Assembly: GCA_004431415.1 (NCBI GenBank)
Contig: QPMI01000240.1
Location: 1-45,473 of the forward strand
Direction: 5' to 3'
DNA: 45,473 nt
Origin: Cyanophora paradoxa CCMP329
Taxonomy: Eukaryota > Plantae > Glaucophyta
Shown: in pieces, positions 7,801-40,942 of the stretch
Layout of the letters: every line of letters begins with the position of its first letter
Numbering within the stretch: position 1 is the stretch's first letter
Program-made: the position numbers and the translations under genes
The notes under the pieces: generated by a model
What the model was told of the DNA's origin: nothing
Seen by the model: only the letters and a program-made list of their open reading frames with translations
Databases searched by the model: none

Positions 7801-7819
7801 GGCTCGGCGGCGGCTTCAC
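1802..7819 (-). CDS. Retrotransposon polyprotein core: APE endonuclease (~5590-4700) and reverse transcriptase (~3400-2480); probably part of a longer ORF broken by frameshifts
   Basis: APE motifs: LTWNIRRL, VALQEVD, VLGDMNS, RLDYALAS, SADHFPV. RT motifs: LRPITLQ, NYGFCRR, DIASAYDSV, GLPQGGIEAP, LAYADD (2737-2726), LNAKKT, RVLGV. Confidence 0.95.
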   Translation of the reverse strand: MKPPPSPRAPPASPQLAPLDLRDAVGPPAAPRCARADGPGPEVKPPPSPRAPPASPQLAPLDLRDAVGPPAAPRCARADGPGPEVKPPPSPRAPPASPQLAPLDLRDAVGPPAAPRCARADGPGPEVKPPPSPRAPPASPQLASLDLRDADGLPPAPRCARADGPGPEVKPPPSPRVPPASPQIASLDLRDAVGLPAAPPCARFDGPGPEDKPPPSPGAPPASPQPMPIVLQGAVDFPAARRCARADGPGPDARPSPGCSAPPASPPPAPAPRDLLDAVGLTAARRRTRAYGPGPAVKPPPGPRAPPVSPPPAPAPRDLQDTISLSAALLRARADGPGPDAKPPPVLSAPPVSPPPTPRDLQDAVGPAARRCARADCPIPRANLRLQKCPGGPSATPRPSSASQEVNPSRDAIAAAAPRRAARLGIQQAAQVLSQLSRRVYIWSTSWTTVARPRYGMLQNLIAGLEHGSPIRAVAYCSSRWSFPFRSERLRAPDDTAPTGTPTACRQKTPTRTGFFIHAIGESGNDSKRPNASANWTAIRECLNSRSIASYSASTGAHASAGPTNAGASSSDAALHDAESCRTNHAYGSGRVLAMRTAAYLAVSPRASAHVHASAGPADAGVTDAAPHDAGLELLGRPARRAPQVQQFVSRPAPLPARLLLCVLLAGLVPAALADIEPSTATAAAVATAAAALSSPTLVTAASSLLMLYPPSLYTADRIDARRHRDVLQIPVLAHPPDAANAKLNLRALTWNIRRLEGKASGNNIATKFISAIDYGRRDWDCHFVALQEVDMVPVDRPPSKPFPPNIRDHLIKTAVRRHKSSYLVYSPPSAARPGTAGSALWISASYAAHRQADYAFDGRVAGARFDFPRTRERLIVLSLYVPDCGHDNLQKELHDLTDYLIAKVAPDIHEPDWQTHLLVLGDMNSTYSPCNDRITGGNPRTETTPPNSYAEIWTLLRATWGLSDTGTPGDFTHISHRADFIDEQGHRPLLDAARLDYALASPTLAARSLGTRTLAVPGRPSPLLSADHFPVLATFTTEGVLSAPPTEPRQPRPQPLPPLFNYAAQPATIRLAFKLAVEAFLNKHGQRYIQLLLAPESSPEYAHRATKSHRSLLCAITQSIKSVAHAPEFSTAKVLRHRVAAQGDMAKFNHLSALDADDEQLVGRVGQALNDWAHQGSTDHPPDETIRAVLRDLPKDVTDIRKSAGSDTTLAFCPSLLAFPDPPNYPDFENGTITGSEIAEYHTQLSTWHLQARAALDNHRRAYTEADIARNIDTRRHLLSHCRSMGRAIQLLLSRFRSAPRLYLTRTAAGLPEVLTDPNEIKRAHLDHFTNFWRLRKAAPNLDAIATKFEDIENGAWLGRFWKRQYRPLSHFTPAVWDRLMAMPEDPELDRLISSLSNGAGGPSGFTNGMIKMLWSPLRLSKTERQALAASHSTDEINSFESAAHWTTSRDAIRALVQSTLLGHVPDHALRGQVYAIPKRDNSADLADLRPITLQEVTWKLVTGLLTHRMEDRIDTHNILRGRNYGFCRRESTDPVLYALRSSLEDAHQFKKPIFGGLGDIASAYDSVSWHSQELSLNRIQLHLHPEGKRYIALHKKAAQHRTACILTPHGRTEYFQVPCGLPQGGIEAPLHWCIFFDAALTAIEERATQSNFGYQLGPHRSDPTRPRSPRPPCPGEPLYFPAGPCPTVSVLAYADDTTMLASSAQGLQHMLDWLSEFLHIHGMNLNAKKTEIFHWKPPRSEEPVKSKYYVGVGDSRAEVGHILSPTTPFRVLGVQFTANLSWTHQVRLLKSQLQSAISVLATKKITVHEFQVILHRVLFPKLAYPLRIMTLTPSQCQSLDAVWLTAAKHTANLAQSVSTAAFSSIYRLPSIAVIQRQQQCVDERLRQELASHTSSLYGQIYRQRVLDTQARYGLPLLPHEYPNLPSGPLTLQKNITLAITADLTSTSHHILTTCDLDTWPPLPPIPSSTRIYYINAIVAPHPPTSRSATLSLRPPHNPRHHGP

Positions 7820-10030
7820 TTCCGGCCCAAGTCCGTCCGCACGGGCGCAGCGCGGGCGGCGGGAGGGCCGACAGCGTCCCGCAGGTCTAGCGACGCGAGC
7901 TGGGGCGAGGCGGGCGGCGCGCGGGGGCTCGGCGGCGGCTTCACTTCCGGCCCAGGTCCGTCAGCTCGGGCGCAGCGCGGGCGGCGGGAGGGCCGACAGC
8001 GTCCCGCAGGTCTAGCGGCGCGAGCTGGGGCGAGGCGGGCGGCGCGCGGGGCTCGGTGGCGGCTTCACTTCCGGCCCCGGTCCGTCAGCTCGGGCGCAGC
8101 GCGGGGCGGCGGGAGGGCCGACAGCGTCCCGCAGGTCTAGCGGCGCGAGCTGGGGCGAGGCGGGCGGCGCGCGAGGGCTCGGCGGCGGCTTCACTTCCGG
8201 CCCAGGTCCGTCAGCACGGGCGCAGCGCGGGGCGGCGGGAGGGCCGACAGCGTCCCGCAGGTCTAGCGACGCGAGCTGGGGCGAGGCGGGCGGCGCGCTG
8301 GGGCACGGCGGCGGCTTCACTTCCGGCCCAGGTCCGTCAGCTCGGGCGCAGCGCGGGGCAGCAGGGGGGCCGACAGCGTCCCGCAGGTCTAGCGGCGCGA
8401 GCTGGGGCGAGGCGGGCGGCGCGCGGGGGCACGGCGGCGGCCTCATCTCAGGTCCGGGTCCGTCAGCTCGGGCGCAGCGCGGGGCGGCGGGAGGGCCGAC
8501 AGCGTCCCGCAGGTCTAGCGGCGCGAGCTGGGGCGAGGCGGGCGGCGCGCGAGGGCTCGGCGGCGGCCTCATCTCAGGTCCGGGTCCGTCAGCACGGGCG
8601 CAGCGCCGGGCGGCGGTGAGGCCGACAGCGTCCCGCAGGTCTAGCGGCGCGAGCTGGGGCGAGGCGGGCGGCGCGCGGGGGCTCGGCGGCGGCTTCACTT
8701 CCGGCCCAGGTCCGTCAGCTCGGGCGCAGCGCGGGCGGCGGGAGGGCCGACAGCGTCCCGCAGGTCTAGCGGCGCGAGCTGGGGCGAGGCGGGCGGCGCG
8801 CGGGGGCTCGGCGGCGGCTTCACTTCCGGCCCAGGTCCGTCAGCTCGGGCGCAGCGCGGGCGGCGGGGGGGCCGACATCGTCCCGCAGGTCTAGCGGCGC
8901 GAGCTGGGGCGAGGCGGGCGGCGCACGGGGGCACGGCGGCGGCTTCACTTCCGGCCCAGGTCCGTCAGCTCGGGCGCAGCGCGGGGCGGCGGGAGGGCCG
9001 ACAGCGTCCCGCAGGTCTAGCGGCGCGAGCTGGGGAGAAGCGGGCGGCGCGCGGGGGCTCGGCGGCGGCTTCACTTCCGGCCCAAGTCCGTCAGCTCGGG
9101 CGCAGCGCGGGGCAGCAGGGGGGCCGACAGCGTCCCGCAGGTCTAGCGACGCGAGCTGGGGCGAGGCGGGCGGCGCGCGGGGGCTCGGCGGCGGCTTCAC
9201 TTCCGGCCCAGGTCCGTCAGCACGGGCGCAGCGCGGGGCGGCGGGAGGGCCGACAGCGTCCCGCAGGTCTAGCGGCGCGAGCTGGGGCGAAGCGGGCGGC
9301 GCGCGGGGGCTCGGTGGCGGCTTCACTTCCGGCCCAGGTCCGTCAGCTCGGGCGCAGCACGGGGCGGCGGGAGGGCCGACAGCGTCCCGCAGGTCTAGCG
9401 GCGCAAGCTGGGGCGAGGCGGGCGGCGCGCGAGGGCTCGGCGGCGGCTTCACTTCCGGCCCAGGTCCGTCAGCACGGGCACAGCGCGGGGCGGCGGTGAG
9501 GCCGACAGCGTCCCGCAGGTCTAGCGGCGCGAGCTGGGGCGAGGCGGGCGGCGCGCGGGGGCTCGGCGACGGCTTCACTTCCGGCCCAGGTCCGTCAGCT
9601 CGGGCGCAGCGCGGGGCAGCAGGGGGGCCGACAGCGTCCCGCAGGTCTAGCGGCGCGAGCTGGGGCGAGGCGGGTGGCGCACGGGGGCACGGTGGCGGCT
9701 TCACTTCCGGCTCAGGTCCGTCAGCTCGGGCGCAGCGCGGGGCAGCAGGGGGGCCGACAGAGTCCCGCAGGTCTAGCGGCGCGAGCTGGGGCGAGGCGGG
9801 TGGCGCACGGGGGCACGGCGGCGGCTTCACTTCCGGCCCAGGTCCGTCAGCACGGGCGCAGCGCGGGGCAGCAGGGGGGCCGACAGAGTCCCGCAGGTCT
9901 AGCGGCGCGAGCTGGGGCGAGGCGGGCCGCGCGCGGGGGCTCGGCGGCGGCTTCACTTCCGGCTCAGGTCCGTCAGCTCGGGCGCAGCGCGGGGCGGCGG
10001 GAGGGCCGACAGCGTCCTGCAGGTCGCATG
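6690..10030 (-). repeat. 126-bp tandem array (~26 units) encoding a 42-aa Pro/Ala-rich repeat
   Basis: GGTCTAGC recurs at 7255, 7381 and 7507. Unit: EVKPPPSPRAPPASPQLAPLDLRDAVGPPAAPRCARADGPGP. Units degenerate toward 6690-7250. Confidence 0.95.
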
Positions 10031-13000
10031 GCGCAGTGGGAGGCAAGGCGCGCGGGGGGCTGGGGCCCGGCGGCATATGTGGCATGCGAGGCGTGATGCA
10101 GCTGGGGCCCCGGCAGGTGGTTAGACCCTGTCCGTCGATCCAACTAGTAGACGTCGGAGTGGTCATGCTCGAGGGCCCCCGCATTTGCGTGCGGCCGCAA
10201 GCAAGGAGGGCAGCGATAGCTCCAAGAGCAATGAGAAGGGGACTGGCCATGGGGAGAAAGGGGATGAGGGGAAGGTGCAGGACGGGATGCGCAGCAGCAG
10301 GTTGAATGTGCCACAAGAGGGCGGCGATGATGGTGAGGAGCTTGGGGGAGTAGTGTGGGTACGGGGCTTTCTTTAAGGGGCCACGGGGGGATATAGTGTC
10401 TAGAGCAGTTTGTAGGGCGTGGCCTGCTAAAGCAGAAACGGTCACTATCGAAATAAATTCTAGGGGTTCTGGAGGATGGCCTAGAAGAAGGAGGAAAGGC
10501 AGGGTAAACGGTGCAGCCAGCACAGCCGGGGCCAGGCCCGGGTCATCTGAGACATAGAGTGCATGCAGGAGATCAGCCCCGAGCTGCCATAGTGCACAGG
10601 AAAGCACATGCCATTCGGCCGCGAGGAAGGCCGGGAAAATAATAGAAAATTCAAGGAGACGGGGTGCGAGAAGGAGAGCAAAGTCGGCGAGGCGGGTCCA
10701 AGCAAACGCTGCCCGGCGGCGTTCCAAAGGGGACAAGGCCGGGGGAGGGCGAGGGGAGGTCGGGGGGGGAGGGACAGGGCAGGTAAGGAGTTGAAGAAGA
10801 GCAGGGCCGGACGAGTTAAGAAACCGCCGGCGGCGCCGGGAGAGGAGTGCGAGCAGAAGGATCCCGGCAGCTGGCGGGGGGAGGGGCAGAGGAGTAGGGG
10901 GAGGCGGGGGCGGGGGGAGGGAGAAGGGTGGGAGGGGGGGAGCAGTTGCTCGGGGTGTCCTAAGAGGAGGGGCGGGGGGAGGGCTGGTCGAGGGGGCCGG
11001 GTACGAGGGATCAATGATCCATAATGGGGATACGGGAACCGCTGCAATAACGAAGCGGAGGGCGTCGATAAGGTGAGGGGCAGTTGTAAGGGGAGGGAGG
11101 GCAAGGAGACAGTGAAGGGAGAGGATAAGGAGGGGGGCCCCGCGGTAAGGGCCTCCACATCGACGCCCGCGGGCTCGTCGCGCATGCTGGGCTTGCCGGC
11201 GGGCGCGAATGAGGAGGGGACGGTGGGCGCTGGGAGCGGGATCGGGAAAAACAAGGTGGCGAAGGAAGCGAGCAGACAGCAGGAGGAGAAGCAGCGAGGG
11301 GAGGGCGAGGAAGGCGGGGGAGAGCTGAAGATAAGACGGGGGCCTGATAGAAGGGGGGAAGAAAGAGGCGGGAGAGGCGGGGAGAGGGGGCGGTGCCCTA
11401 GGGGTAGTCCACAAGGGGAGAGGGGGGGGGTCAGGGGGGGCCGAGAGAGGAGGCGACTCCGCGAAGGACACTGCGGAGGGGTCCAAGGGGGGGAAAGGAG
11501 AGTTCTATGTAAGAGCCGGGCAATCAAAGGGTGAAGTGGGGGGTACTCTGAGAGGCGGGGGGGTAGCTGGAAGAGAGATGAGAAAGGGGGTAGTGAGAGG
11601 GCGAGGAGAAAGGAAAGAAGAGAGAGGAGAGAGAGGGCGGAGAGGGCGAGTAGCTCGGGGGTTGTGATATGGGGCAGGGGAGGGCACGAGCCGTGCAGGA
11701 AGGCATAACGGGGGGAAGTGGAGGCCGTACAGGGGGAAGGGGGGTCAGGGACTGCCGTTAACGGGCGTCGGCGCGGCTCAGGGGCGGGCTGGAGGCGGGG
11801 CTCTCGGGCTGGGCGGCGGCGGGTGGCGTGGCCCTTGAGGCGCCGGGCGAGGAGGGGCGGGCGGGGTCGGGGAATGGAGCGGCCAGACGAGAGCGCGAAT
11901 CGGACCGTGAGGCGGACACCCCGGGGCGGGGCAGGAGAACTGGCGAGGGAGCTGGCCTGCGGAGCCATCGGGCGCGTCCTCACAGCTGCTGGGGGGGGTA
12001 AAGAGGGCCAGCTGTTCCGGAGGGCAAGAGCGGCTGCAACGTTGCAACGTGCCCGCGCCGTCGAGAAGGGAGGGCGCGCGGGCAGGGGCGTCAGCGGGCG
12101 CAGGGTACGGGGGCGTACACGATTGGACTGTGCAGGGCGGAGGCCAGGTAGGGGGAGGTCGGGGCGGGAGGGCGGCGCAGCAGAAACCTGCAGCTCAGCC
12201 GGTAGGGGTGGGGGGGCCCGGGAGCTGAAGAAACGACGGAGGCGACGCGGATGACTCTTCCGCGAGGCCCGGGGCCGGCGAGGCGAGGGTCGGCTCTGAT
12301 AGGGGGAGAAGGGCGAGCGCGGGAGCCAAGGAGTTGCACCAGCGAGGGCCGGGCGGGGTGTAGGGCAAGAGCGGGGGCGGGAGCGGCGAAGGCGTCGGCG
12401 GGCGGACCTCGGCAGGGGCCGCCAGGGCCGGCGACGGCGGCAGGGCGTGGGGCCTAGCAGCGGGGCGGGACGGCGAGGGGGGCGGAGTAGGCGCGGCGAT
12501 CGGGGGCCCCGGCGGAGGCCCGGGGGTCCGGGTTCGACTTCGCGGGGGGCGGGCTCGGCGGCATCGTCTAGGCGCCGGCGTCGTCGGACATAGCCCCGGA
12601 CGCCGATTCCCACGGACAGGCTAAGCGCCATGAGTGTCGCCAAGGCGGCCCAGCTGGGACTAGATAGGAGCCCGAGGATCTCAGAGGCGTAGACGTAGGG
12701 AGGGGAAGCCCAGGTGGAGGGTTCAGCTAGGGGCCCGAGGACCGGGGCAAAGCTAGCCGCCAGCGGGAGGAGGGCGAGGAAAAGAAAAGAAAACAGACCA
12801 AAAGTGGAGACGCCATGCCGGAGACCCAGTTTCCTGCGAGGAAGGTGTGGCATGAGAGGGTCGAGGTGGAGAGGCGGGCGGCGGGCGGGCGGGCGGGAGC
12901 GCGCGCGCGGCGGAGAGCGAACAGCAGGGGGGCATCTTACCCCGGTGAGCCTTGCGGCCCCGGGGGATCGACGCGCGGGTTGCCTATCCTCGGAGAGCCG

Positions 13001-13710: not shown

Positions 13711-14600
13711 TCCCACCTCGACCTCCCCGGGGCCGCCGTCGCTGCCCCGGCCGGCGCGCAGGCTCCTCCGGCGGACGGGGCGCACCGGCCCTGCGGCAGA
13801 CCAGGACGCACGCACCGGCCTCCTCGCCCCCGTCTTCCGTCCGGGATCCTCCGCGACCTCTGCACCGCGCGCCCCGCCCCGGCCCGCCCCGCCCCGGCGG
13901 CGCGTGATTCGGCGTTGGGCGCAGGTCGTGGAGGGCCGGGACGAGGACCGGAGGGGCTCGCTGCCGACGCGCGCGGCGGGCGCCTCGTCGTCCACAGGCT
14001 GGGGCCTGGTGCGCCCCCGGACCCCCGCCCCGCCCGGCCGCCCCGAGGGCCCCCGCGCCGGCGGGCCCCGGGGACGCTGCTCTGCGGCTGCGGGCGGAGT
14101 GGTGCGGGGCGGGGCCCCTCCGGAGACCTCTTAGGCTCCTCGCCGCGCCCGCGGCTGCAGCGACGCCGACGCGGATCCGGAGGCCGCGCCGCGTCGGCGG
14201 GCGCGCTGCAGGCGCCCCGCCCGCCCCGGCCCCCCGCCCCGGCGACCTCCCCCCCGGCTCGTGGCGGAGTGCGCCTGGCGCCCCTCCCGAACGTCGCGCC
14301 GCTCGCGCCCCTGGCGGGGCGGCGGGGCGCGGCGGGCGGCGGGCTCGACCTCCTCTCCGCGAGGGACCGTCGGACGCCGCCGGCCGCGCGCCCCGCCAGC
14401 GGCAGTCGCACATGTACACCGCCGCTCACGCCGTCGGCGCGCAAGGCCTCCGGATCCGGCACCGTCCCGCAAGACAGCTGGCCACATCGTTCGAGTCCGA
14501 GGGATCCTGGTGGAGTAATTGGAGTCCGGAAGCAGTGTCAAAAGTATTACAGCACCTTCCGCTGGCGTGGGCGCCAGGTGCGACGTTGATCTCGATCTAG
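13711..14600 (+). pseudogene. 3' part of an unknown host gene, cut on its 5' side by the retrotransposon
   Basis: Host-type intron ((CCCCG)n ... GCGCAG at ~13924) and a frame ending ...SWWSNWSPEAVSKVLQHLPLAWAPGATLISI*. No recognisable domain. Confidence 0.3.
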
Positions 14601-15657
14601 CATTGGATCGCTACCTTAGCTTGAGATAATTTCGCACAGATTTCGACTGCAGGTCTTCCAGCAAAAGATGTGAGCGGTGTTCACGTATCTGAATCTGGGT
14701 TACTCTAAATCGCGGACAGGACGCCATCAAGAAACGGGACCGCCTCGCTATCATTTGCGATCACATCGACGCTAGGACTGGGTGGTCACCTCGTCTTTCA
14801 GATGGTATTCTAAATTACCCTCGTTCTGGTGCGTTTGAAATACGCGAATTTATGAATACATAAGGAAAGAGTCTATAGCTACGACTGAATTTGGATCAAC
14901 GCAGAATACGAGGGGGAGGAGTTTTATGCCGCCCTTCAGAGGGGCGAGCTCGATCCAATCGATCACGAAGATATCCACAATCACGTCTTCCGAAGTTCGC
15001 TTTTCTAAAGCGACACGAGGACTCCGGCCGAGTCTCCGCCTTACAAGAGGTCCTTTCAAAAGTTTCTTATTCGCTTTTTCGCAAGCACAAAGTGGCGAAT
15101 TCAAATTTTTTAATGCGCGGATTCCTCGAGTTCGACGTCGAGCCAGGGAGGCATCGGCCGCGGGCTTCCGCGGAGTCTCCCGCTTCGAGGAAGGCTTGTG
15201 GCGCGGAAAGTTCTGCTGGCGGAGTCTCGACTTCTCTTCTGCATCTTCTTGGGATGCTCAGGTGATCGAGATCGTCATGCGCAAGGCGATGAGAGTGCAC
15301 GTGACTCAGTGACATCGACGATGCGTTCTGCGCTTCTTCTCGGGAGGCGGCGCGGTTGACGTTCCGCGACCGAGTTCCGCGACCCTCTGCCGCCAGCGGC
15401 TCGACGAGCGCGAGGGCACATGTACGCCCTCCCCGCAGCGCGCGCAGGACGCTCAGCTCAATTTCGACCCGTCCGGCACCTCTGATCGGATAAAACAATT
15501 CCGGAATTCGAATAGTATTCTTAAAAAATCCGTCCTTTGCATTTCCGGAATAATTTCAATCGACCGCGGATTCCAGGTTTCAAGAACGAGCCGTTCTTCG
15601 TCGACCTGCAAGACGGAAAGCTCAACGGGTACATCGAAGCAGCCTCGAACCCCCGCG
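14043..15657 (+). repeat. Left copy of ~1.6-kb direct repeat (putative giant target-site duplication)
   Basis: Near-identical to 24265-25864. Starts CCGAGGGCCCC and ends CCTCGAACCCCCGCG, directly before retrotransposon sequence. Confidence 0.95.
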
Positions 15658-16189
15658 GCCTGGAAATACGACACCAGCACCTTCCCCACCCAAGCCTGGA
15701 AACATGTCCACACGGGAGAAGACGCCGCAGAGTTCATTGGCCGTGGCGAGGAAGTCCATCTGTACGGCAAAGGACGGGGCCGCCCCATCCCCCTCCACGC
15801 CCCCATCTACCGGGAACGTTGGGCGGCCGCCCTCCTCCTCCGGGACCCTGAGGTCCTCCTGGGGACAATCCAGACCAACGGCCCGGCACTCACAACAAAA
15901 CGGCGACGCACGACCCCACGCACCAGCTCCCGCCCCCCCCAGCACACGGCCGCAAAAGCCCGCCGCCGTGTCCGACGCAAATGTGACCCCACCCCCCCTC
16001 CCTTCCGCCCCCCCCTCCCCCTCGTCCCCCACCCCCCCGGTCTCTCAACTCCCCTCCCCCTCCTCGCAACCCCCCACCCCCCCCACGCCCACTCCCCACC
16101 CCCACGCCCTCCGGCGCCCGAGGACCGCCCAGCTGCCTCCCCAGGCCGAACCCCCGTCCACCCGACTGAATTCCCCCTCCCCCGCCCCC

Positions 16190-16990
16190 TGACGCTGGCG
16201 GAGCAAAGCTGGCTGGGGAATGCCTTCCGGTTTGCAGACAATGATTACTGCGCGGAGCAAACCCTCGTGTCGCAGCCTCCCCTTCCACCTGCCCCCAGAG
16301 CCGACCCTCACTGTTACCCACCCATTCGTCGAGGCGACCTTATCCATCTCCGGCCGAAAGCCGCCCTCAGCCTCCCCCTAGTGGAAGCTTTCCTTGACCT
16401 GCTCTCCTCCCGCGAAGCCGCCCTGGCCTCGCCCCACCCTGCCTACTTCCTGTCGTCCAGCTCATACCCCGCTAGTGCATGCGCAGCCTCCCACTTTGAC
16501 TCCCGCGGCGCCGCTCTCCCCCCCTGCACCAATACCTTCCTCACGGACGCCTTCTCAAAGCCCGCCTCGTTCTCGTTCCCATCCTTACCTATCGCTCCAC
16601 CCAACATATTCCACCGACCCCTTGCCGACCCCCCCTCCCGAAGATCCTGGCACCCCAGGGCCCCCGGGTCACTGGCATCTATTGGTTCTCCTTCCTCAAA
16701 CGCGATCGTTCTACTTCCACAACGGCTCCTCGAAGTCCCCGACCACCTTGTCTCCTTTGCACAAGACCTGGCAGCCACCTGGAATCAGCGCGACTCCGGA
16801 GTCTCCCCCCCTCCCCCAATTTTGCAGGTGGACCTACCTACGTCCGGAGACATCCCTCTCCGTTCTCCAGCCCCCCAACAGCACGGCCTGCGGTCCCCTC
16901 CTTCTCCTTACAGCTGACTTACTCAGTCGCTCCTCCGCACTTACCCCGTCGGACCTGCCCCGCCCCCCGCCTACATTCAGACCGACGCTG
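16190..16990 (+). CDS. Ulp1/SENP-like (C48, clan CE) cysteine protease domain in the retrotransposon ORF, frameshifted in this assembly
   Basis: Ordered motifs across frames: IRRGDLIHLRP...LVEAFLDLL, AYFLSS, RLVLVPI, GHWHLLVL (His 16670), SFYFHNG, LQPPNSTACG (Gln 16868, Cys 16889). Confidence 0.7.
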
Positions 16991-17223
16991 CAGCGCTCCG
17001 CAAATACCGCGAATATATAGCCCTCAGCCTCTGTTACGGGTCCGTCACCCTTGACCCGATATGCTGCAGTCCCGCTCTCCCGGCCCTCAGACCCCCACCG
17101 ACCTTCCCGGGGCGTACCCAACCGCCACGCCGCCCCCAGTCTCCACCGGCGGTACCCTGCCTACGCTAGACTCCCCACCATCCTCCCCCGACCACCCAGC
17201 CCTCCCGCGCTCCCCCACTGTGC

Positions 17224-19940
17224 TTGTGTCTCCCCCGCCCCGCCCCGCAGGGCCTGCCACCCCCCCCCCCTCCCGGCGCTCGCTACGCACAAGAACTCGC
17301 CTCCCAGCTCGCCGACCTGGCTCGCAACGAAGCCTCGGCAACAGCGCGCCGCCTCTTCCGACCGTCCCACGTGACTCCACTTGAAGCGGCAACCATTCTA
17401 GCTGAAGCTGCTCACCGGGACGCCACCCAGCCGCAACCAAGGTCCGCCAAAACATCTAAAGCAGCCGCAAAGAAAGAGACGGCCAGGACCCCGGCCAAGA
17501 ACCGCATCCCGAACCCAGCTTACACCCCCGACAACCTCCACAATGACGCCGTCGACAAGCTTGCCAAATCGGCCCCTAACGCCCCCCTCTCAGCCCTCCT
17601 CTTCGTCCCCACAGTTTCACATGCTTCCTCATCCGCGTCGGCCTCCCACCTCCGCCATCGCACGCCCAGCCCCGGGAGTCGAACCATACCGAGGCCGACT
17701 CCACGCGTACCGCGTCGAAGGAGACCCCGCTCTCACTTCCTAGCCGAAGCCTCCCTCTCCCAATACCTTGACTGGCGCCAGCTTCGCAATGCGGGGGCCA
17801 TCCTCAGTAACCCCCACGTCACCCTTGCCCCGGCCCTCTCTCTCGTATCCGATAAGCCGCCGGATCGCCGAACCCCCACAGGCGACCACCTCCGCAAGGT
17901 CCGATTCCAATGCATTCTCGGAGCTCTCCCCTCCCTCACCGTCCGCCTCCTTCACGACCCCGACCTCTACGGCCCTCTCTTCCCTGACGGCACCGCCCAC
18001 TGCCCTTTCTGCCACCTCTCTCCCACCCCTGCCCCAATCCCGGACGACACTGTCTCCCCCCCCTCCTCCCCTCCCCACCCCCCCTCCCCCCCCCCCTCCC
18101 CTCCGGGGGCCGCAGACCCCGGACCGCCCGACCCACAACCCACCCCCCCGAAGACTTTGCTCACATATTTACTTGCCCCGCCGCTCATCTCCTCCTCCAA
18201 GCTTTCCAGGACGCACTCGTGACCTTCCTCCGCACCCGGGTTCTCCGCCATTCGCCCAAACCCTTAGGACACGACGACACTATCTTTGAACTCTTCCCTT
18301 CCTCCGCCTCGTCTCCCCTGACCCCACCTCCCCCTCCAATCCGCCTCCTCTCTCCCAATGCAAATCCAGCCCTTTTCCGCCCCCCGGTCTCACCGACACC
18401 CTATGGAAAAGCTTAGCCCAGCCCTGGCTGACATGCTCCCCTTCCCTGCCCTGCCCTCCTGCGCCTGGGTACCCCAGCAGGATTGCCCGCCCTCTGCACA
18501 GCCCTGGGCATCAACAAGACCACCACATCGCTAATCCAAAAAGACCGAGCTCTGCTCCTCGACCAACACCTGCGTGCAATCTGGAGGGACCGCTGCACCC
18601 GCAATCACGCTTGGGAGTTCCGTCACGGCATTACGGACAGAACCAAACGCCGGTACCGCAAATGGGCAGGCCTCAACCGCCCACCTCCCGAGCAGCCGCC
18701 TGGTCCCCTCCTCCCCCAATCCTCCCCGCCCCCTCCCTCCATGACACCATCTCCATCACCAACTTCTGCTGCGGATTGAGCTCGGACGGCCAACCTTGGG
18801 TCCTCCTTGCGAATCTCCGCCAAACAATTGCACGACTCCCTGCCGCCCCCCACCCAGGCCCCTCCCTCCCCAGCCGCCGCCGCAGGACCCGCCGCCGGGA
18901 CCTCTGATTTCTCTTGCACCTGCGGCACCCGCTTCCCCTCCGCAGCTGCCCTCCAAGCTCACTCCGACGCCAGAAAAGGAAAATGCCCTGCCCGCCCCGA
19001 GATCATCCCCTGCCCTACCTTCCAACCTGTGGTACCCCTATCACGACCGTCACCCGAGAACCCCGACGATGTTGTCCTGCCCGCCTCACCTGCGGGCCCT
19101 ATGAACACTGCTCAACCTTCCAAACGCCCCGCTACGGGGCCCCCCCTGGCCCTCTCCCCGAAACGCCCACGCCCGTCGCCTGCCTCGCGCAAACGGACAG
19201 CCGATACACCCCTCGCTCCGGCACCCAAACGCCCGTGCCCCGTCATCCCTCCCCCTCCCGCCCCCGCACCTGCCCCGCCCGTCCCTACGACGAAACGAAA
19301 GGCATCCGGCCGCAAGACCCCCAAGCGCAGGACCAAAAAAGCGCGAACGGTGCCGATACCCATGGGACAACCCACAATCACGTCCCTCTTTACACCCGGC
19401 GTGTATAAACCACTCACGACGCCGCACACAGCTGACTCTCCCCCCCTCTCCCCGCCCCAGCCAACTCTTCCGATCGACAACGAAACCCCGCAAGACGCCG
19501 CCCCTCGGCCCCCCACGGCCCCCCCTCCGACCCAAACTAACCCTCACACACCAAACCCCCAGCCGGCCCCAGTCACCACCCAGGCCTCGGCCCCCCCAGC
19601 GGCTTCGGCCCCTCCCCTGGCTTCGGCCACCCCATCGGCTTCGGCCACCCCCCTGGCTTCGGCCAACCCCATGGCTTCGGCCACTCCCCTCGCTCCGCCC
19701 TCCCCCCCTAACCCGGTCGACCCCTCCCGACCCCTCGCGGCCCGTCTCGCCTCCGCACTCCCAGATCTCTGCGCCGCCTGTCAGTGCCCACGAACTCTCC
19801 ACTCTGTTATCCCCGCACCCCTCCCTGCCTTGCCCGCATCCGCTGCCCGCCCCAAACTGCTGCCTCCGCTCACTCCCTCTCCTTCCTCATCTCCTCCTCC
19901 TACCACCTTCTTCACCTTGACAAAACGGGACACCGTCTAA
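17224..19940 (+). CDS. C-terminal part of the retrotransposon ORF (RNase H end, CCHC, zinc-finger-like motifs, basic NLS-like patches); frameshifted
   Basis: Pieces of ORFs 17224-18222, 18483-18779 and 18807-19940, including FSCTCGTRFPSAAALQAH, KRKASGRKTPKRRTKK, QPTITSLF and CAACQCPRTLH. Stop at 19938-19940. Confidence 0.65.
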
Positions 19941-21039
19941 TCGGGGTCCTGGGGCGCAGGTGAGGAGGAGGGAGGAGGCGGAGTGAGGAGGAGGCCGTAA
20001 GAGTCTGCTAGACCCCTAAAAAAACGATTAGCCAAGTCCAAAAACAGGGTACAGCAAAGCCGGGCGCGCGCCGCCGAGCACGTAGCTAGCGTGCAGCTAG
20101 GCCGGCCAAGGCCCTTGAAGATGGGAGAGAAGACCGGGAAGCGCAAGGAGAAGCAGAAGGATCCCAGTCGGCAAGCGCAGGCGAAAGCTACGTGGGACAA
20201 GCGCCGGAAGTCGGGCGCCGATGCAGGGCCCCAGCAGCAAGCAATCGAATCGAGCGGTTCGTGCTGCAACTTCAACAATTGCTCATAATAGGAACCCGGG
20301 CCGAGTATTCCGTGCGGCACGGTTTCGCAGATTTCCAGGGAGCGGGGCCGGCGGGCGCCCCAGCCGCTCCAGAAGCATCTCGAACATCTCAGAATGTATC
20401 AGAGCCACGTACGCGCGCTTGTCCGGGCCGCGAACGGCCCCCGGTCGACTTCCCGCCACGCCGCCCTGACTTAGACGCAGCGGGAGCGAGTTCCACGCTC
20501 CAGATCGAGCTTCCGTGCCTCATGCTGGCTCAGAGCGCATCGTTCTTGCGTGAGCGGCGCCCGTTCCAGCGCCGCACGCGTGCCGCGGCCTCACGCACGC
20601 GCTAGCGCTCGCAGCGGACCCCAGCGCGGAGCACGCGAGCGCCAGCAGCAGCAGCAGCGCGGCGGGCCCCAGCAACGTCGGAGGCATCGCGCAGCACTTC
20701 GGTGAGCCCGCCGGCGGCGCAGCGCGTGCGTGTAGGATTCGATCCGCCCGCGCGCAGAGAGCCCGCCCGAGCGTGGCGGTACGGAGCTCGCTCTCTACAG
20801 CAGCAGCGACGTGCCCTACGATCCATGGACCTCGGTGCGGCCGCCCCGGGCCTCGCCCCGCACGCGCGGCCGCCCGAGCGCCTGCTGACGCCGCCGCGTC
20901 CGCCGCCGCCGCGCAGACATGAACACCTCTCCCGTCGTGGCCTTCTGCCGCTGCCTCCCGGGGCGCAGCCTCCAACGCCGCGCGGCCGCGCCCGCGAGCG
21001 GCGGCCGCGCGGACGGCGCCCCTCGCCCGACGCCCGCCC

Positions 21040-21310
21040 TCGAGGCCCGCCGCCCCGCCCCGCCGCCCCCGCGCTGGCCGCGGAGCTGATCCGCCGCCCG
21101 CAGCGCCTCCGTCTCGCCGGCGCCGTCCAGTGCCGACGCCCGCCCTCGAGGCCCGCCGCCCCGCCCCGCCCGCCCCCGCGCCGGCCGCGGAGCTGATCCG
21201 CCGCCCGCAGCGCCTCCGTCTCGCCGGCGCCGTCCAGTGCCGACGCCCGCCCCTCGAGGCCCGCCGCCCCGCCCCGCCCGCCCCCGCGCCGGCCGCGGAG
21301 CTGATCCCCC
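21040..21310 (+). repeat. ~107-bp tandem repeat, about 2.5 copies
   Basis: GAGCTGATCC recurs at ~21083, 21190 and 21298. Confidence 0.85.
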
Positions 21311-21864
21311 GTACTGGTGCCGTCCCGTACCCCGCTTCAGCGAGCCGGGCCGCTGACCGTGCGAAAACTGCCCGCTGTGCCGAAAGCGACCATCGCGCTG
21401 CATTTTTACTGCACATTTAGACAAAGAATCATCCTAGCGACCTCCGCGCATCCTCACGCGCGGGAATAGGGAGGCGCAGAGGAGCGCGGCGGCCCAGAGG
21501 GTTCTCCAGGCGAGATCTCGGGCCCCGCTCCTCGCTGGCTGCGGCGCCGGGCGCCGCGCTCGGCGTGTGGATTGGCCATGCCAAGACGCGCACGGGAAGC
21601 CGCGCGGAGCCGTCCGTCGCCGCCGCCGCGCCGAGAAAAGAGGACCTGAAGGAAGGTCACTAAGAAATCATGTACCCCCCGGTTGGGGTACGCACCGCTT
21701 GCCCGTACCCGTCGCCGTCGGGCCGCACAAGTCCGGCGGTCCGGCGCGCCTGCGGTGGCCAGGGACGGGTCGGGAGGTCCGTTCTAGGGATAGTGTCAGA
21801 ATAATGTCAGAATAAGGTCAGGCGGGGGCGTTCAGAACCGGGCGATCTAGAAGCACGTCGAAGC

Positions 21865-22790
21865 GCGCATTGAAGAGTCATTTGAGATTATGCAAAGAGC
21901 TTAAGAGCGGCGCCGCGGTCTGGCGAGCGCGCACCAGAAAAGCGCGCAGCTCCTCAGCCGTTTCGCGTGGGGATCTCGCCTGCAAAATCTGAACAAGCAG
22001 AACTCGAGATTAGATGCAGGCTAGTGCGCGGGGAAAGAGAGCGGAACCGCGGCAGCGATTCCCGTGGCCCAGCGGCCGGCAACGGTGCCAGGAAGTCGTC
22101 CCTAAAAGTGAGCTGCCGGGCCCGATACTAGGATCATTTAACTCGTATTGAAGCCCTCTATAAGCCTACGTGGTCGGCCGAAAGTTGATTCTCCCCCCCC
22201 TAAGGTCCCCGCGGACCTGGAGGCGGCGCACGCCGTCGCCGACCTTCACGGCCTCCACGAGGGCGCCAGATCGATCCCCGACAATCTGGGAGGCAAAAAT
22301 ATGTGAGAAGCGCATTGAAGAGACATTTAAGATGATTGATGGGGCTTAAGAGCGGCGCCCTGGCCCTGGCGCTAGATCCGCAAAGGAAGCTCCTCACGGA
22401 ATCGAAGGGGGTCGAAAGGCGGTTCCCCGTACTCTACTCCCTCAGAGGAGCTGCCTCCGCTAAGAAAATTTTGGGAGGAATCGCCGCCCTGGCGAGCGCG
22501 CACCCGAAACGCCCGGAGCTCCTCAGCCGTTTCGCGTTGAGAGCTCGCCTGCGAGATCTGCGAGTTCCAGGATTGAGGTTAGATGCAGATTAATGCGCGG
22601 GATAAGAGAACGCGCCCGCGGCAGCGATTCCCGTGGCACAGCGGCCCGGCAACGGTGCCAGGAAGTCGTCTCTAAAAGTGATCTGCCGGACCGGAGACTA
22701 TGCTTTTTAAACTCGTATTGAAGCCCTCTATAAGCCTACGTGGTCGGCCGAAAGTTGATTCTCCCTCCCTAAGGTCCCCGCGTACCTGGG
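21865..22790 (+). repeat. Diverged internal direct repeat (~21865-22220 vs ~22310-22790)
   Basis: Shared blocks include GGCAACGGTGCCAGGAAGTCGTC and ACTCGTATTGAAGCCCTCTATAAGCCTACGTGGTCGGCCGAAAGTTGATTCTCCC. The second copy has an extra ~110 bp. Confidence 0.85.
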
Positions 22791-24264
22791 CGAGCGCCGC
22801 GACGGGGCGCCGCTTAGCTCCAGCACCGCGAGGGGGAAGGAGCGGCGGAGGACCCGCTCCCGCGCGGTCGTTTCGCGAGCATCTGAGACGAGGATCACGG
22901 CTATGCGCAGCGATTGGGCGGGAGCGCACGGGTGCGGCCGCGCGACCATGAAACTGCGGCGGGGGTCGGTGCTCGGCGCAGCGCGGCAGCGGGCGCGGCT
23001 CGCCTGCAACAGGATCAACCGGAGAGATGTTGCAGAGCGTTGCGCGTGCGCGGTGCGTCGTCCGCCTTCGACGGTGCAAGCAATCCGCACGCCGCCGGCC
23101 GACCTGTGCGAAACAGCTTCAGGACGAGCCCTAAGCATGCGCGATCCTCCAATCATCCTTTTCTGCGCGAGGAACGACGGCGGCGCCGCACCTGGGCGCG
23201 CGGCTGTCGGTTGTCCGAGGTGCGCCGAGGCAGTGAGCGACGAGGCGCGCGGACGCCTGCAAAAGGAGCCCGGGACGCTGTTTCGGCGGCTGTAGGCTAT
23301 CTACGCCGGAAAAGCTCGCCGGCCGAAGGTTGGCTGGCGAATCCAACGTGCCGCCCGGCTGCTGCTGGCCGCTCGACGCGCGGACCGCAAACCCGCATGG
23401 TAGGACAGCCGAGAGGCTCCCCGTGGCATCTACAGGTGCAGTAGCTAGCGGGAGAGGCTCCTGACAGGCGATCGGCCTGCGCGTTCGTCAGCGGCACTGT
23501 TGCGCGCGACCGACTGTTGCCCGCGACCTAAACCAGCGCACCAATAGTGTCCTGCAGGCAGGGAGATGCCGCTGCTGCTCGCTGGGCGCCCGCGCTACGA
23601 GGCTTGCGCGACGCGGCAGGCGCTACGCGGGGCGGTGCGGGTCGGCAGGCGGGAGTGTCTCGCGGCATTCCAGAAAGATCTTGTATGCTATACTATCACT
23701 TCTGGAGGCGTTGCTGCCGCCTGCTGACCGGCACGCCGCTCCGGAGGCTCTCCGAAGGTGCCGGTCGCTTGCCGACCGCCCGAAGCTCACACGCTCGCCC
23801 GGGGACGCGGCGAGTTGCGATCCGGGCATTATCGAACTAGCTGAGAGCGTTGGTCACGCTTGCAGGGCGCCCCCGGCACGCACGCCGACCGAGCTCCTAA
23901 ATCGGACCCGGTCCGGGAATACTGTACCGGGGTCCTAATCGTTTTTTTAGGGGTCTAGCAGACTCTTACGGGCGGGGGGGCGGAGCGGCGGCAAGGGAGG
24001 GCGGAGGACTGCGAGACATTTCACTTCCAGGGCTCATGAGGGATGGAGGAGTTGATCAAGGGGTGGGCGCGCGGGTCTGGTTACGGCCATCACCGAAAAC
24101 CATGGCTCCCCCACTCAGGCGAACCTCCCATATTGAGCGACCATGGCCGGCACCTAGCTAGCACCTTCGGCTAGATAGATGACCGGTCGGAAGGGCACGT
24201 CGCGTAGAACATTGATACATGTGCCGTGTTGTATCAATGCGACGTCCATTTTTGCAAAAAAAAA

Positions 24265-25864
24265 CCGAGGGCCCCGCGCCGGCGGGCCCCGGGGGACGCT
24301 GCTCTGCGGCTGCGGGCGGAGTGGTGCGGGGCGGGGCCCTCCGGAGACCTCTTAGGCTCCTCGCCGCGCCCGCGGCTGCAGCGACGCCGACGCGGAGGCC
24401 GCGCCGCGTCGGCGGGCGCGCTGCAGGCGCCCGCCCGCCCCGGCCCCCCGCCCCGGCGACCTCCCCCCCCGGCTCGTGGCGGAGTGCGCCTGGCGCCCTC
24501 CCGAACGTCGCGCCGCTCGCGCCCCTGGCGGGGCGGCGGGGCGCGGCGGGCGGCGGGCTCGACCTCCTCTCCGCGAGGGACCGTCGGACGCCGCCGGCCG
24601 CGCGCCCCGCAGCGGCAGTCGCACATGTACACCGCGCTCACGCCGTCGGCGCGCAAGGCCTCCGGATCCGGCACCGTCCCGCAAGACAGCTGGCCACATC
24701 GTTCGAGTCCGAGGGATCCTGGTGGAGTAATTGGAGTCCGGAAGCAGTGTCAAAAGTATTACAGCACCTTCCGCTGGCGCGGGCGCCAGGTGCGACGTTG
24801 ATCTCGATCTAGCATTGGATCGCTACCTTAAGCTTGAGATAATTTCGCACAGATTTCGACTGCAGGTCTTCCAGCAAAAGATGTGAGCGGTGTTCACGTA
24901 TCTGAATCTGGGTTACTCTAAATCGCGGACAGGACGCCATCAAGAAACGGGACCGCCTCGCTATCATTTGCGATCACATCGACGCTAGGACTGGGTGGTC
25001 ACCTCGTCTTTCAGATGGTATTCTAAATTACCCTCGTTCTGGTGCGTTTGAAATACGCGAATTTATGAATACATAAGGAAAGAGTCTATAGCTACGACTG
25101 AATTTGGATCAACGCAGAATACGAGGGGGAGGAGTTTTATGCCGCCCTTCAGAGGGGCGAGCTCGATCCAATCGATCACGAAGATATCCACAATCACGTC
25201 TTCCGAAGTTCGCTTTTCTAAAGCGACACGAGGACTCCGGCCGAGTCTCCGCCTTACAAGAGGTCCTTTCAAAAGTTTCTTATTCGCTTTTTCGCAAGCA
25301 CAAAGTGGCGAATTCAAATTTTTTAATGCGCGGATTCCTCGAGTTCGACGTCGAGCCAGGGAGGCATCGGCCGCGGGCTTCCGCGGAGTCTCCCGCTTCG
25401 AGGAAGGCTTGTGGCGCGGAAAGTTCTGCTGGCGGAGTCTCGACTTCTCTTCTGCATCTTCTTGGGATGCTCAGGTGATCGAGATCGTCATGCGCAAGGC
25501 GATGAGAGTGCACGTGACTCAGTGACATCGACGATGCGTTCTGCGCTTCTTCTCGGGAGGCGGCGCGGTTGACGTTCCGCGACCGAGTTCCGCGACCCTC
25601 TGCCGCAGCGGCTCGACGAGCGCGAGGGCACATGTACGCCTCCCGCAGCGCGCGCAGGACGCTCAGCTCAATTTCGACCCGTCCGGCACCTCTGATCGGA
25701 TAAAACAATTCGGAATTCGAATAGTATTCTTAAAAAATCCGTCCTTTGCATTTCCGGAATAATTTCAATCGACCGCGGATTCCAGGTTTCAAGAACGAGC
25801 CGTTCTTCGTCGACTGCAAGACGGAAAGCTCAACGGGTACATCGAAGCAGCCTCGAACCCCGCG
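24265..25864 (+). repeat. Right copy of ~1.6-kb direct repeat
   Basis: Begins immediately after the A9 tail and continues into unique sequence after 25864. Confidence 0.95.
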
Positions 25865-27750
25865 AAGCAATTTGCGAATTCCTCGGGAACCGAGGGGAGT
25901 ACCAGAAGCTCGTGCGCCCCGTTGTTTGTTCACGCGCCGGCTGTGTTTGAAACGACATTTCAACGCCGGCTCCACGTGCACTTCAGACTGGCAAACGCGC
26001 CGGCAAAGTCGGCAGGCGCCTCGAGCTCTAGATCTGCGGGGCGAATTCGGGATCGACGAGCTCGAGGAGGACGAGCTCGATCGCGAGCTCGAGGAGGACG
26101 ATGGCGATCGCGAGGATGAAGAGGCCGCCGACTCCGACACCGCTTCGAATTCTAAAGTCTCAATATTCTGCGTGTACATTCGAATTCCACTTCAAAACAT
26201 GCATTGACATGCACATTCATGTCGCTCACACAAACGTGTGATCATGACGCTGCAGATTGCAGGGCCGGCGAGTGCACGTGCACGTGCGGAGCAAGATCTC
26301 GATCATCGGATCCGGAATTCGAATCAGACCAAGAGGACTCGGACCCGGGCCCGGAGGGCGAGCCCGAGGAAGCCGCCCGCCCTAGCTATAGGCCTGGTGA
26401 GCCAAGCCACCATCATATGGCATCGGACCGGATCGCAGAGGGGGTCTGATCACGGTCGCCATCGGTCGCCATCGCGACCCCCGCCCCTCGCGCAAGGATC
26501 CGCAGAAATTCAGGACGTCGACAAGGCTGTCGACAAGGGCATGTGCACGGGTGCGCGTGTACATGTTTTCTCGCACGAGATATTTCTTCGTGCATCCTAT
26601 TTCTGAATATTAATGCGGATCAAGATCTAGAGATCTAGAGGCGCTGGAACAACCTGCTCAAGCGTGGCCGGGTAATTTTATAAGACGTTCGAACCTTTGC
26701 TCGATCACTGCAATTGATCGCAACGAAGGTGGTCCCCGGCTGCCGCTCCGAGTCGGTGCGGGAGCGGCGGGGCCGCTTCTACGTATACGCCGCCTTCCTC
26801 CTCGGGGACGAGAAGGCGCGCCGCCCGGCCCGCGCCCAGGCTTAGGCCATATAGGGTCGAGCCCCTGTGCGTCGCGGCCTTGTCTCACGGGCCGGGCCCC
26901 GCAGGTCCTCTCCCCGCGCTGGCATCGGCGGAGGCGGCGATGCGCTTCCGCGACCGCTGCATCCTCGCCTGGTTCGGGCCCGCGGGCTCCGCCGCCACGG
27001 CCTCCTCCCCTCCTCCACTTCCCCCCGAGGGTGCGCGCGCTCCCGCGGCCGGTCGCGCGCTCCGGGCTGCGCTTAGCGGCCGGGCCGGGGGCAGAGTACG
27101 CGGGGGAGGGGTGGTACAGGGGCGAGCCGTGGCGCTTCGCGGGGCCCCGGACGGGGAGGTGGGGGGGCGGGGCCGGCCGTGCGGCGCACCGTCGCTTCGT
27201 CGCCGCGCCCTCGGGGTGCCCCGCCCCCGCCCCACCCACGCTCGCGCTCGGCCCCGATATCGATCGCGGCCCGAGCGCGGTCGCGAGCCCCGATTGCAGG
27301 GCGATGACGTGCAGTGACTTTTTGCAGCTCGGAGATCCAGACGATCGCGATGCAGAAGAGTGCGATGAGGAGCTCGAGCCGCATGCGCGGGGGGGCGCGG
27401 AGGTCGAGCCTCCACCGCGAGCCGACGTCGACGTCGACGCGGGCGGGCCCGGGACCGGGCCCGGGGCGGCCAGCCAAAACGACGATCGCGAGGGCGGCCG
27501 CAGGCGGGCCCGCGCCGCCGGCGCCGGCGCCCCCGGCAGGCGTGGCCGGCGAAGAACGCGCGATGACGATCCAGATGCAGAAGAGCGGCCGGCGAAGAAG
27601 GGAAAGAAGGAGCCCAAGAGGCGGAGTCACGATATCGATCCTGCGGCCGCGCCCGCCAGCGACGACCGCGGCGACGCCGACGCCTCGCGATCGCGAGCCG
27701 GAAAGAAGATCGCGAGGAAGAAGGCTGCAGGGGGCGGGAGCTGCGCATGC
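25750..27750 (+). CDS. Hypothetical spliced gene(s) with acidic and basic low-complexity segments; boundaries uncertain
   Basis: Coding-like pieces EFGIDELEEDELDRELEEDD, EFESDQEDSD, AEAAMRFRDRCILAWFG and EERPAKKGKKEPKRR, with GCAG acceptors between them. Confidence 0.3.
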
Positions 27751-37176: not shown

Positions 37177-37426
37177 CCGGGGGAGGAGCCTGTCGCGGGT
37201 ACGCTGCCGTCGCCTCCGCACATCTGATCTTCGCCGCTGCCGCTCCGGTGTGCGAGCGTGTGCGTGCACCGTCGTATCCTGTAGCCTCTCGACCTGCTGC
37301 CGCTGCCAGGAGCCCGCCCGGACGCGAACGTGGACAAGTTTGAATTGCGGCGCCCGAATTCGGGTGCGCATGGGCGAGCCGCGCTTGCGCGTTCCTTTAC
37401 GCGCCTTAAAAGCGTCCTGCAGCGCA

Positions 37427-40869: not shown

Positions 40870-40942
40870 CGGGGGGGGGGGAAGCTGGTCGCGGGTACGC
40901 TGCCGCCGCTCCCGCACTTCTGCTACTCTTCGCCGAGAGCAA

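Follow-up and report, generated by a model that had tools for sequence, protein, structure and literature searches.

A 5'-truncated LINE between two copies of a 1.6-kb segment in the glaucophyte Cyanophora paradoxa

Organisation of the locus

The window, by which we mean the whole 45,473-nt stretch of DNA that was analysed, contains an 8.6 kb insert that includes a 5'-truncated LINE in plus orientation and lies between two direct copies of a segment designated X (Table 1). A BLASTN comparison of the window with itself aligned the two copies at 98.64% identity over 1618 columns, with 1 mismatch, 21 gap positions and a bit score of 2846, a similarity far beyond chance. Copy 1 is bounded on its left by ...GGCCGCC and on its right by LINE sequence from 15658, and copy 2 is preceded by a run of nine adenines (24256-24264) and followed by unrelated sequence from 25865. 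The repeat adjoins the LINE exactly at both ends, which is the anatomy expected for a target-site duplication, and at 1.6 kb it exceeds the usual length about 100-fold. Self-comparison and reading of the junctions bear out the layout of the original prediction, W-X-LINE-A9-X-Y, and place the repeat edges exactly where it had put them, at the 5' junction of the LINE and after the A-run.

Table 1. Features of the locus, with positions in the window
Feature	Position	Strand	Basis
Left flank W, last bases GGCCGCC	14036..14042	.	direct reading
X, duplicated target copy 1, 1615 bp	14043..15657	.	self-comparison, global alignment
5'-truncated LINE body, ~P0001 residues 2310-3720	15658..19994	+	tblastn, protein match
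Nested block, 3977 bp, perfect 37-bp inverted repeat at its bounds	19995..23971	.	alignment
Rest of LINE 3'UTR, terminal hairpin and A-run	23972..24264	+	alignment to L001, folding
X', duplicated target copy 2, 1600 bp	24265..25864	.	self-comparison, global alignment
Right flank Y, first bases	25865..25880	.	direct reading, heptamer search

As had been claimed, the copies differ mostly by homopolymer indels. In a global alignment the copies are separated by a sole substitution (14568 T / 24780 C). A 6-bp indel lies at 14172 between CGGA repeats, and some 15 single-base indels fall within short C/G runs; losses are biased to copy 2 (13/16, binomial p = 0.02). Consensus noise accounts only partly for this divergence of approximately 1%, nearly all of it indels. 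Differences of this kind are nonetheless those that PacBio consensus errors leave, as would be expected if the genome held a single X and the second copy, or one of the junctions, had been made by the long-read assembler or by polishing. Such errors exist in the window, where an LRR gene (37440-38220) carries two one-base losses 20 nt apart, and the published assembly retained unpolished PacBio sequence at zero Illumina coverage (PMC6704402). We consider an artefact improbable, however: both novel junctions (X to the truncated LINE, and the canonical LINE 3' end to X') coincide exactly with points of biological meaning, a precision that a mis-join would not give, the repeat is comfortably shorter than RSII reads, and the copies carry different consensus errors, suggesting that they derive from separate pile-ups. 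A haplotype join in particular is less likely because the published C. paradoxa assembly, if it is the source of this DNA, rests on long PacBio RSII reads, and k-mer spectra led its authors to consider a haploid organism more likely than a diploid one (PMC6704402).

A domain search of all ORFs of X and Y found none, which gives no support to X as a gene-bearing host segment. A word-indexed protein search with an ORF inside X gave no useful match, and the exact products of the ORFs in X, of those spanning the X/LINE and X'/Y junctions, and of P0002 are unrecorded. Rfam and tRNA scans of the window gave no match.

The LINE and its 3' end

The identity of the insert as a LINE was found solely by an exhaustive search of representative proteins, a Pfam search of 20 insert ORF pieces having given no match. 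In the exhaustive search, the pieces matched the last 38% of P0001, an APE+RT protein of 3720 aa encoded on a metagenome contig (E = 8.7e-41). Residues 2328-2882, 2844-3095, 3129-3306 and 3673-3716 of this protein are collinear by tblastn on window positions 15715-19942, so that protein homology begins 57 bp into the insert and stays clear of X. The LINE body comprises a degenerate C48-protease-like region, an RNase H C-terminal motif, a CCHC zinc-finger region and a C-terminal extension, followed by the stop codon (19938-19940) and the first 54 bp of the 3'UTR. With homology starting at residue 2328 of 3720 and the canonical 3' end intact, the claim of a 5'-truncated LINE stands. The truncated insert itself keeps neither of the domains that P0001 carries, Exo_endo_phos (residues 13-292, 8e-8) and RVT_1 (733-1037, 6e-18); RT and APE domains also occur in a minus-strand LINE relative within the window, which leaves the window before reaching its 3' end. 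In-frame stops (16915, 17167, 18414 and 18777) and a single frame change interrupt the coding sequence of the LINE piece, and this damage contrasts with the very young look of the flanking repeats. Word-indexed protein searches returned P0001 alone for its C-terminal region and nothing useful for the APE-RT region, and metagenome scans for relatives of the LINE family found none.

The description of the insert as a LINE holds for its outer sequence; the insert is not in one piece, since a 3977-bp block is nested in the 3'UTR. This block, in which no protein family was found, interrupts a GGAGG-rich tract that is unbroken in L001, the relative of the insert, and a 3-bp GGC target duplication possibly surrounds it. 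The stop codon of the insert lines up with that of L001, and without the block the two 3'UTRs can be aligned over their full length; the last ~35 nt and the length of the A-run (9 nt) are conserved up to the junction, where similarity ends. A hairpin lies beside the terminus in both 3' ends when each sequence is folded separately (~24198-24252 in the insert). Judged from this comparison of one insert with one relative, position 24264 is the canonical 3' end of the LINE family; a metagenome scan for the conserved 3'-end pattern found none. The nine adenines, which had been taken for a poly(A) tail, are probably an encoded 9-nt terminus, because L001 carries AAACAAAAA of equal length in their place.

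The same comparison bears on whether X could belong to the element, as a 3' extension, a transduced segment or a terminal repeat, in which case the locus would represent two adjacent copies of the element, or an element bounded by repeats. In the insert and in L001 alike, the A-run is followed by the 10-mer GGCCCCGCGC, whereas just 0.33% of the GC-rich 30-mers of the window have a 10-mer in common with the L001 flank, so that a few bases past the A-run are perhaps encoded by the element; furthermore, an A-run before a direct repeat recalls the polypurine tract ahead of a 3' LTR. Past GGCCCCGCGC, however, the 81-bp flank of L001 is unrelated to X, UTR conservation is highest at the A-run and then ends, and LINE protein homology stops short of X. 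Nor does X behave as the terminal repeat of an LTR element: it lacks TG...CA ends (it starts CCGAGG and ends CCGCG), its composition continues into Y, and the outer flanks, GGCCGCC and AAGCAAT, differ, with no short duplication outside the pair. Between the copies there is no gag, pol or recombinase, just the 3' portion of a LINE and a block without recognised coding. It is thus very unlikely that X is part of the element.

Origin of the duplication

The features expected of a TPRT LINE, namely RT and endonuclease in the family, 5' truncation with an intact 3' end, and a flanking duplication, are all present at this locus. We therefore favor, as the probable explanation, a single TPRT event in which a giant APE-type LINE was inserted in 5'-truncated form and 1.6 kb of the target became duplicated, with second-strand priming 1.6 kb from the first nick. 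The bottom strand would first be nicked at the left edge of X (14042/14043, between GGCCGCC and CCGAGGG), and cDNA synthesis would begin at the structured LINE 3' end with its encoded A-run. A top-strand 3' end right after CCCCGCG, 1,615 bp downstream rather than at the usual ~10-20 bp, would then prime the second strand. Following unwinding, fill-in of both single-stranded copies of X would leave one on either side of the LINE. The distal 3' end may stem from cleavage by the endonuclease of the LINE at another cognate site, or it may have been an unrelated nick or a replication end.

Two unrelated events could in principle yield the same arrangement, if an older X-X tandem duplication had received a LINE exactly at its junction or had been rearranged later. 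LINE-independent tandem duplication does occur in the window (35466-37236 vs 38868-40935). Such a history would nevertheless require the LINE to have hit a single exact position within 1.6 kb, without a target duplication or deletion of its own, and the near-identity of the copies speaks against an older duplication; we regard it as extremely improbable.

A variant of the single event differs in where the second copy of X originates. In this integration coupled to replication, the endonuclease or a stalled integration would cause a double-strand break; break-induced or fork-associated synthesis from the reciprocal end would copy 1.6 kb, and this end would then be joined to the cDNA. This mechanism has been proposed for 1-10 kb tandem duplications with L1 at their junctions (bioRxiv 10.1101/2024.12.14.628481), and replication or repair ends have been suggested as distal primers (PMC5223499). 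Low-fidelity synthesis could account for the surplus of one-base losses that separates the copies, and a PIP-box-like motif follows a basic run both in the window ORF at 18780-19937 and in P0001. The motif was spotted by eye, however, in these two sequences only, and approximately 16 changes over 3.2 kb of new synthesis lie far above known polymerase error rates, assembly noise being the simpler account. An identical heptamer at both ends of the duplication is also not predicted by a repair origin, which we consider unlikely.

This heptamer, CCCCGCG, occurs only twice in X, counting both strands, once 8 nt inside the left edge and once exactly at the right edge. In copy 1 it lies at 14051-14057 and 15651-15657, and in copy 2 at 24272-24278 and 25858-25864, the second position being the last 7 bases of the copy in each case. 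Across 11.9 kb of L001 there are four CCCCGCG heptamers, and one lies 2 nt past the LINE 3' end; the 10-mer shared by the sequences after the two A-runs also speaks for the favored reading. The 5' end of the minus-strand LINE in the window was sought beside a heptamer at 6001-6007 and could not be placed. This placement, observed at three junctions of two elements for a motif defined post hoc, suggests that nicking may be motif-guided; alternatively, the right-edge heptamer could be a microhomology that the target shares with upstream LINE sequence absent from the insert. We put forward, as a tentative and somewhat doubtful proposal, that heptamer positions set the length of the duplication, the first nick falling 2-8 nt upstream of a sense CCCCGCG and the second right after one. 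Usually, one heptamer would serve both nicks and give a duplication of ~9-15 bp; at times the second nick would fall at the next downstream heptamer, which in this case lies at a distance of 1.6 kb, perhaps with the help of another bound protein. If this proposal is correct, sequence-guided nicking of the second strand would yield kb-scale duplications as a programmed by-product, a second endonuclease domain would be unnecessary, and the target sequence would allow duplication lengths to be predicted. The rule of a heptamer at both ends is simple and lends itself to checking on all LINE copies in the genome.

Relation to known LINE duplications

Searches of P0001 against Pfam, whole or sliced, gave only APE, RT and a weak C48 match (Peptidase_C48, E = 0.005, below the Pfam cut-off), and a [KRH]PD-hydrophobic or PD...D motif is absent from all 3720 aa. 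With this relative as proxy, no restriction-like endonuclease (PD-(D/E)xK) was found in the LINE family at the sequence level. The CCHC region resembles zf-RVT, a lead that comes from a language model only, and an AlphaFold model of the region after it (residues 3125-3330) had a pLDDT of 44, too low for use. In a search of PDB sequences the RT of P0001 matched four R2 proteins (best E = 1.6e-10, weakest 8.9e-5). When the RT and APE regions were compared with all PDB chains by phmmer, no L1 ORF2p was returned at E <= 10, human L1 ORF2p chains being taken as present in that set; the RT and APE clearly like those of L1 ORF2p that would place the family in the L1 clade were thus not found.

Target duplications of 5-20 bp, the baseline of the original prediction, give an incomplete picture, as kb-scale LINE cases have been published (PMC9977147, PMC5223499, bioRxiv 10.1101/2024.12.14.628481). 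The locus is a further example of this known rare outcome, reported for Chlamydomonas and human LINEs. De novo insertions of Dualen-4b_cRei in C. reinhardtii mutation-accumulation lines have flanking duplications with a median of 900 bp, and a restriction-like endonuclease besides APE was suggested by the authors to explain their length (Lopez-Cortegano et al. 2023, PMC9977147). The resemblance is considerable: in a GC-rich algal host, a LINE is flanked on each side by a duplicated target of hundreds to thousands of bp, and Dualen carries APE, RT, RNase H and a cysteine protease. Several features that would assign the family to Dualen/RandI were nonetheless not found. Whereas Dualen has a second endonuclease, none was detected in P0001; its protease is Josephin-like and the one here C48/Ulp1-like (weak); and its tail is an (ATT)n or (CTTT)n microsatellite (PMC3747384) in place of the 9-nt A-run. 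Dualen events, moreover, were observed de novo, whereas ours is reconstructed from one assembly.

Human L1 is likewise an APE-only LINE with 5'-truncated inserts and kb-scale target duplications. In NER-deficient cells these range from >100 bp to 5.3 kb, with a median of 1495 bp (PMC5223499, Servant et al. 2017), a distal second nick or a replication/repair end being proposed as the cause; very large L1 target duplications are also attributed to Gilbert 2002 and Symer 2002, as cited in PMC5223499. Those insertions involved engineered elements in cultured repair-deficient cells, in contrast to a natural insertion in an alga whose duplication is bounded by a repeated heptamer and whose family has an RT matching R2 proteins rather than human ORF2p. 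The L1-associated tandem duplications of 1-10 kb found in cancers and L1-expressing clones, regarded as large TSDs, similarly have a polyadenylated LINE piece at the junction; they differ in being somatic or tumor events attributed to break-induced replication, with no end motif reported (bioRxiv 10.1101/2024.12.14.628481). The R9 LINEs of rotifers make a 126-bp target duplication (Gladyshev and Arkhipova 2009, cited in PMC9977147). As represented in the citing paper, this duplication is also unusually long, family-typical and set by two specific nick positions, but it is fixed in length, confined to one rDNA site and made by an RLE-type element, whereas the one described here is of kb scale.

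What is new at this locus is the combination of a family in which no restriction-like endonuclease was found with CCCCGCG at both ends of the duplication. Because both this glaucophyte LINE, with no second endonuclease detected, and human L1 make such duplications, the cause can be argued to lie in the choice of the second-strand 3' end. LINE duplications of kb scale copy whole promoters or exons in one step, and the long direct repeats left behind can recombine later, providing a source of structural change.

The direct repeat and the insert it flanks

Alignment of the window against itself by BLASTN revealed, apart from the satellite array, a single direct repeat that stands out (repeat family D18), formed by 14043-15657 (X) and 24265-25864 (X'), coordinates that the original prediction had given correctly to the base, as direct reading also confirmed. 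Over 1618 aligned columns the two copies share 98.64% identity; there is 1 mismatch, and 21 positions are gaps. X is immediately preceded by GGCCGCC and gives way to new sequence at 15658, and X' lies between nine A (24256-24264) on its left and unrelated sequence from 25865 on its right. The copies differ by this single substitution, by an indel of 6 bp located between CGGA repeats, and by some 15 one-base indels that sit in short runs, mainly of C or G. The published Cyanophora paradoxa assembly (712 contigs, 67.6% GC) was built from PacBio RSII reads with Illumina majority-rule correction, zero-coverage stretches being left as unpolished PacBio sequence, and haploidy was judged likelier than diploidy from k-mer spectra (PMC6704402). 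Since one-base losses occur elsewhere in the window, the indel-dominated differences are most readily explained as noise in the consensus, X and X' themselves probably being nearly identical. Such losses are seen in a continuous leucine-rich repeat unit at ~37780-37810, which is readable only across three frames (2, 1, 0) because of two one-base losses 20 nt apart, which point either to indel error in the assembly or to a pseudogene of very recent origin. Consensus noise accounts only in part for the bias of small losses towards X' (13 of 16; binomial p = 0.02) and for the excess of differences in moderately GC-rich sequence, six of them falling within the 54-56% GC part of X, more than expected from the window's coding regions. 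Misassembly is unlikely, as RSII reads easily span a 1.6-kb repeat and the two novel junctions coincide exactly with points that make biological sense.

No Pfam match was obtained for 20 ORF pieces from the insert (15658-24264), but an exhaustive phmmer search matched the ORF at 17170-18219 to P0001 (E 8.7e-41), a 3720-aa protein encoded by L001, an ENA metagenome contig. The Pfam domains of P0001, Exo_endo_phos (residues 13-292) and RVT_1 (residues 733-1037), identify it as an APE-type LINE protein of unusually large size; it also has a weak Peptidase_C48 match (residues 2624-2729, E 0.005). By tblastn, the plus strand of the insert is collinear with P0001 residues 2328-2882, 2844-3095, 3129-3306 and 3673-3716 across 15715-19942, a match that takes in the stop codon. 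Because this homology starts 57 bp within the insert and is absent from X, the insert holds only the last ~38% or so of the ORF of a giant LINE, as in a textbook 5' truncation, and the 5'-truncated LINE originally predicted is thus borne out by both searches. Motif reading likewise supports a LINE C-terminal region: NDAVDKLAK corresponds to the C-terminal motif of RNase H, and a CxxC...HxxxC finger is followed by a W..R..N region. Leads from a language model, to clusters of RNase_H and zf-RVT, agree with this.

Other features of the window are listed in the table. The minus-strand LINE (76-5608) has one frame change only in 5.5 kb and leaves the window at its left end; upstream of the APE start its ORF continues uninterrupted for a long way, across the 126-bp array. 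The 3.4-kb-period duplication surrounds a leucine-rich-repeat gene (37440-38220, plus strand), and its junction is without a LINE.

Repeats and mobile-element features located in the window
Feature	Position	Strand	Description
Nested block	19995-23971		3977 bp; bounded by perfect 37-bp inverted repeat
Inverted-repeat arms	19995-20031 and 23935-23971		perfect over 37 bp; imperfect continuation inward
Tandem repeat	21027-21311		107 bp x2.7; inside nested block
Direct repeat	21920-22220 / 22489-22789		300 bp, 86%; inside nested block
Second, long copy of the giant APE-RT LINE superfamily	5608-76	minus	P0001 residues 2-1828; 48% and 37% identity (tblastn)
Tandem array	6700-10170		~25 units of 126 bp (first units 132 bp); 80% GC; within long minus-strand ORFs
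Tandem duplication	35466-37236 and 38868-40935		3.4-kb period; 94% and 87% identity

The 3' end of the element

Downstream of its stop codon, L001 has an unbroken GGAGG-rich tract and ~400 bp of UTR ending ...TGCAAACAAAAA at 11861, whereas in the window this tract is interrupted by the 3977-bp block. No protein family was found in the block, which represents either a nested insertion or cargo specific to the family and may be a non-autonomous TIR transposon. A possible 3-bp GGC duplication is seen at the block. Once the block is set aside, the two 3'UTRs align from stop codon to terminus, with conservation highest in the last ~35 nt and similarity ending after the terminus. The A-rich terminus is 9 nt long in both elements and is preceded directly by a hairpin in each (each 3' end folded singly); by eye the loop-proximal stems are alike, whereas the lower stems differ. 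The end-to-end alignment, the 9-nt terminus and the hairpins together mark 24264 as the canonical LINE 3' end. The original prediction had placed a poly(A) here; an A-run does stand at the junction, but it is probably encoded rather than a tail, the L001 terminus also being 9 nt. With this correction, and with the 3'UTR split by the block, the core of that reading, a LINE insertion flanked by a ~1.6-kb target-site duplication, is supported from the assembled sequence alone. The L001 contig stops 81 bp past its LINE 3' end (flank 11862-11942), as could happen if a repeat had broken the contig, and on the 5' side of its LINE (L001 1-296) no short target duplication can be seen.

Candidate nicking sites and the origin of the duplication

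In its anatomy the locus matches a target-site duplication, at about 100-fold the usual length. It was probably generated in one event: a nick in the bottom strand where X begins on the left, cDNA synthesis from the element's 3' end, priming of the second strand by a top-strand 3' end 1,615 bp downstream, and filling-in of both single-stranded X copies. That the LINE landed by coincidence in an older tandem duplication is an unparsimonious alternative to such an origin.

The 10-mer GGCCCCGCGC follows the A-run in both the window element and L001, and only 0.33% of the window's GC-rich 30-mers have any 10-mer in common with the L001 flank. Past this 10-mer the flank is unrelated to X, which, with the absence of LTR features from X and the end of LINE protein homology outside it, disfavours the view that X belongs to the element. 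The heptamer CCCCGCG has only two sites in X, both strands counted, one at positions 9-15 and the other formed by the final seven bases, and the same two in X', near the left edge and at the very end; L001 has four over 11.9 kb, of which one lies 2 nt past the LINE 3' end. As the heptamer was derived from the two 3' junctions, its match at X's right edge provides a test of its own, and its exact placement there by chance has a roughly estimated probability of ~0.001-0.005 (plus-strand density ~1 per kb). This coincidence suggests, from three junctions, that the element's nicks may be guided by CCCCGCG, the second falling at the next heptamer downstream. Alternatively, the right-edge heptamer could reflect microhomology to the upstream part of the LINE, which is missing here.

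A PIP-box-like motif, which may be a PCNA-binding site, lies behind a basic NLS-like run in low-complexity surroundings of both LINE proteins, at window 19374-19409 (ORF 18780-19937, plus strand) and at P0001 ~3530-3545 (GQPTITSLFTPG vs KRKTITAFFPPG). It mildly favours an origin of the X duplication through repair or replication coupled to LINE integration, an explanation that also draws on the break-induced synthesis from the reciprocal end proposed for human L1 (bioRxiv 10.1101/2024.12.14.628481), and that we consider unlikely.

Relation to other long LINE target duplications

Long LINE target duplications are already published, and the present locus adds a further case. Dualen-4b_cRei insertions in Chlamydomonas mutation-accumulation lines have a median target duplication of 900 bp, for which the authors suggested two endonucleases as a possible cause (PMC9977147). 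Human L1 target duplications in NER-deficient cells reach 5.3 kb (median 1495 bp), and those exceeding 100 bp make up as much as 10% of HeLa events (PMC5223499); tandem duplications of 1-10 kb occur at L1 junctions in tumours and L1-expressing clones (bioRxiv 10.1101/2024.12.14.628481). A literature search found no paper on glaucophyte LINE target duplications. The window LINE family differs from Dualen in tail and protease type and, by sequence, is not demonstrably Dualen; in a PDB sequence search the P0001 RT matched R2 proteins, not human ORF2p. Pfam and motif searches found no restriction-like endonuclease motif or domain in the full-length relative P0001. What makes the case worth following is that, in a LINE family in which a second endonuclease was not found, CCCCGCG stands at both ends of the duplication.
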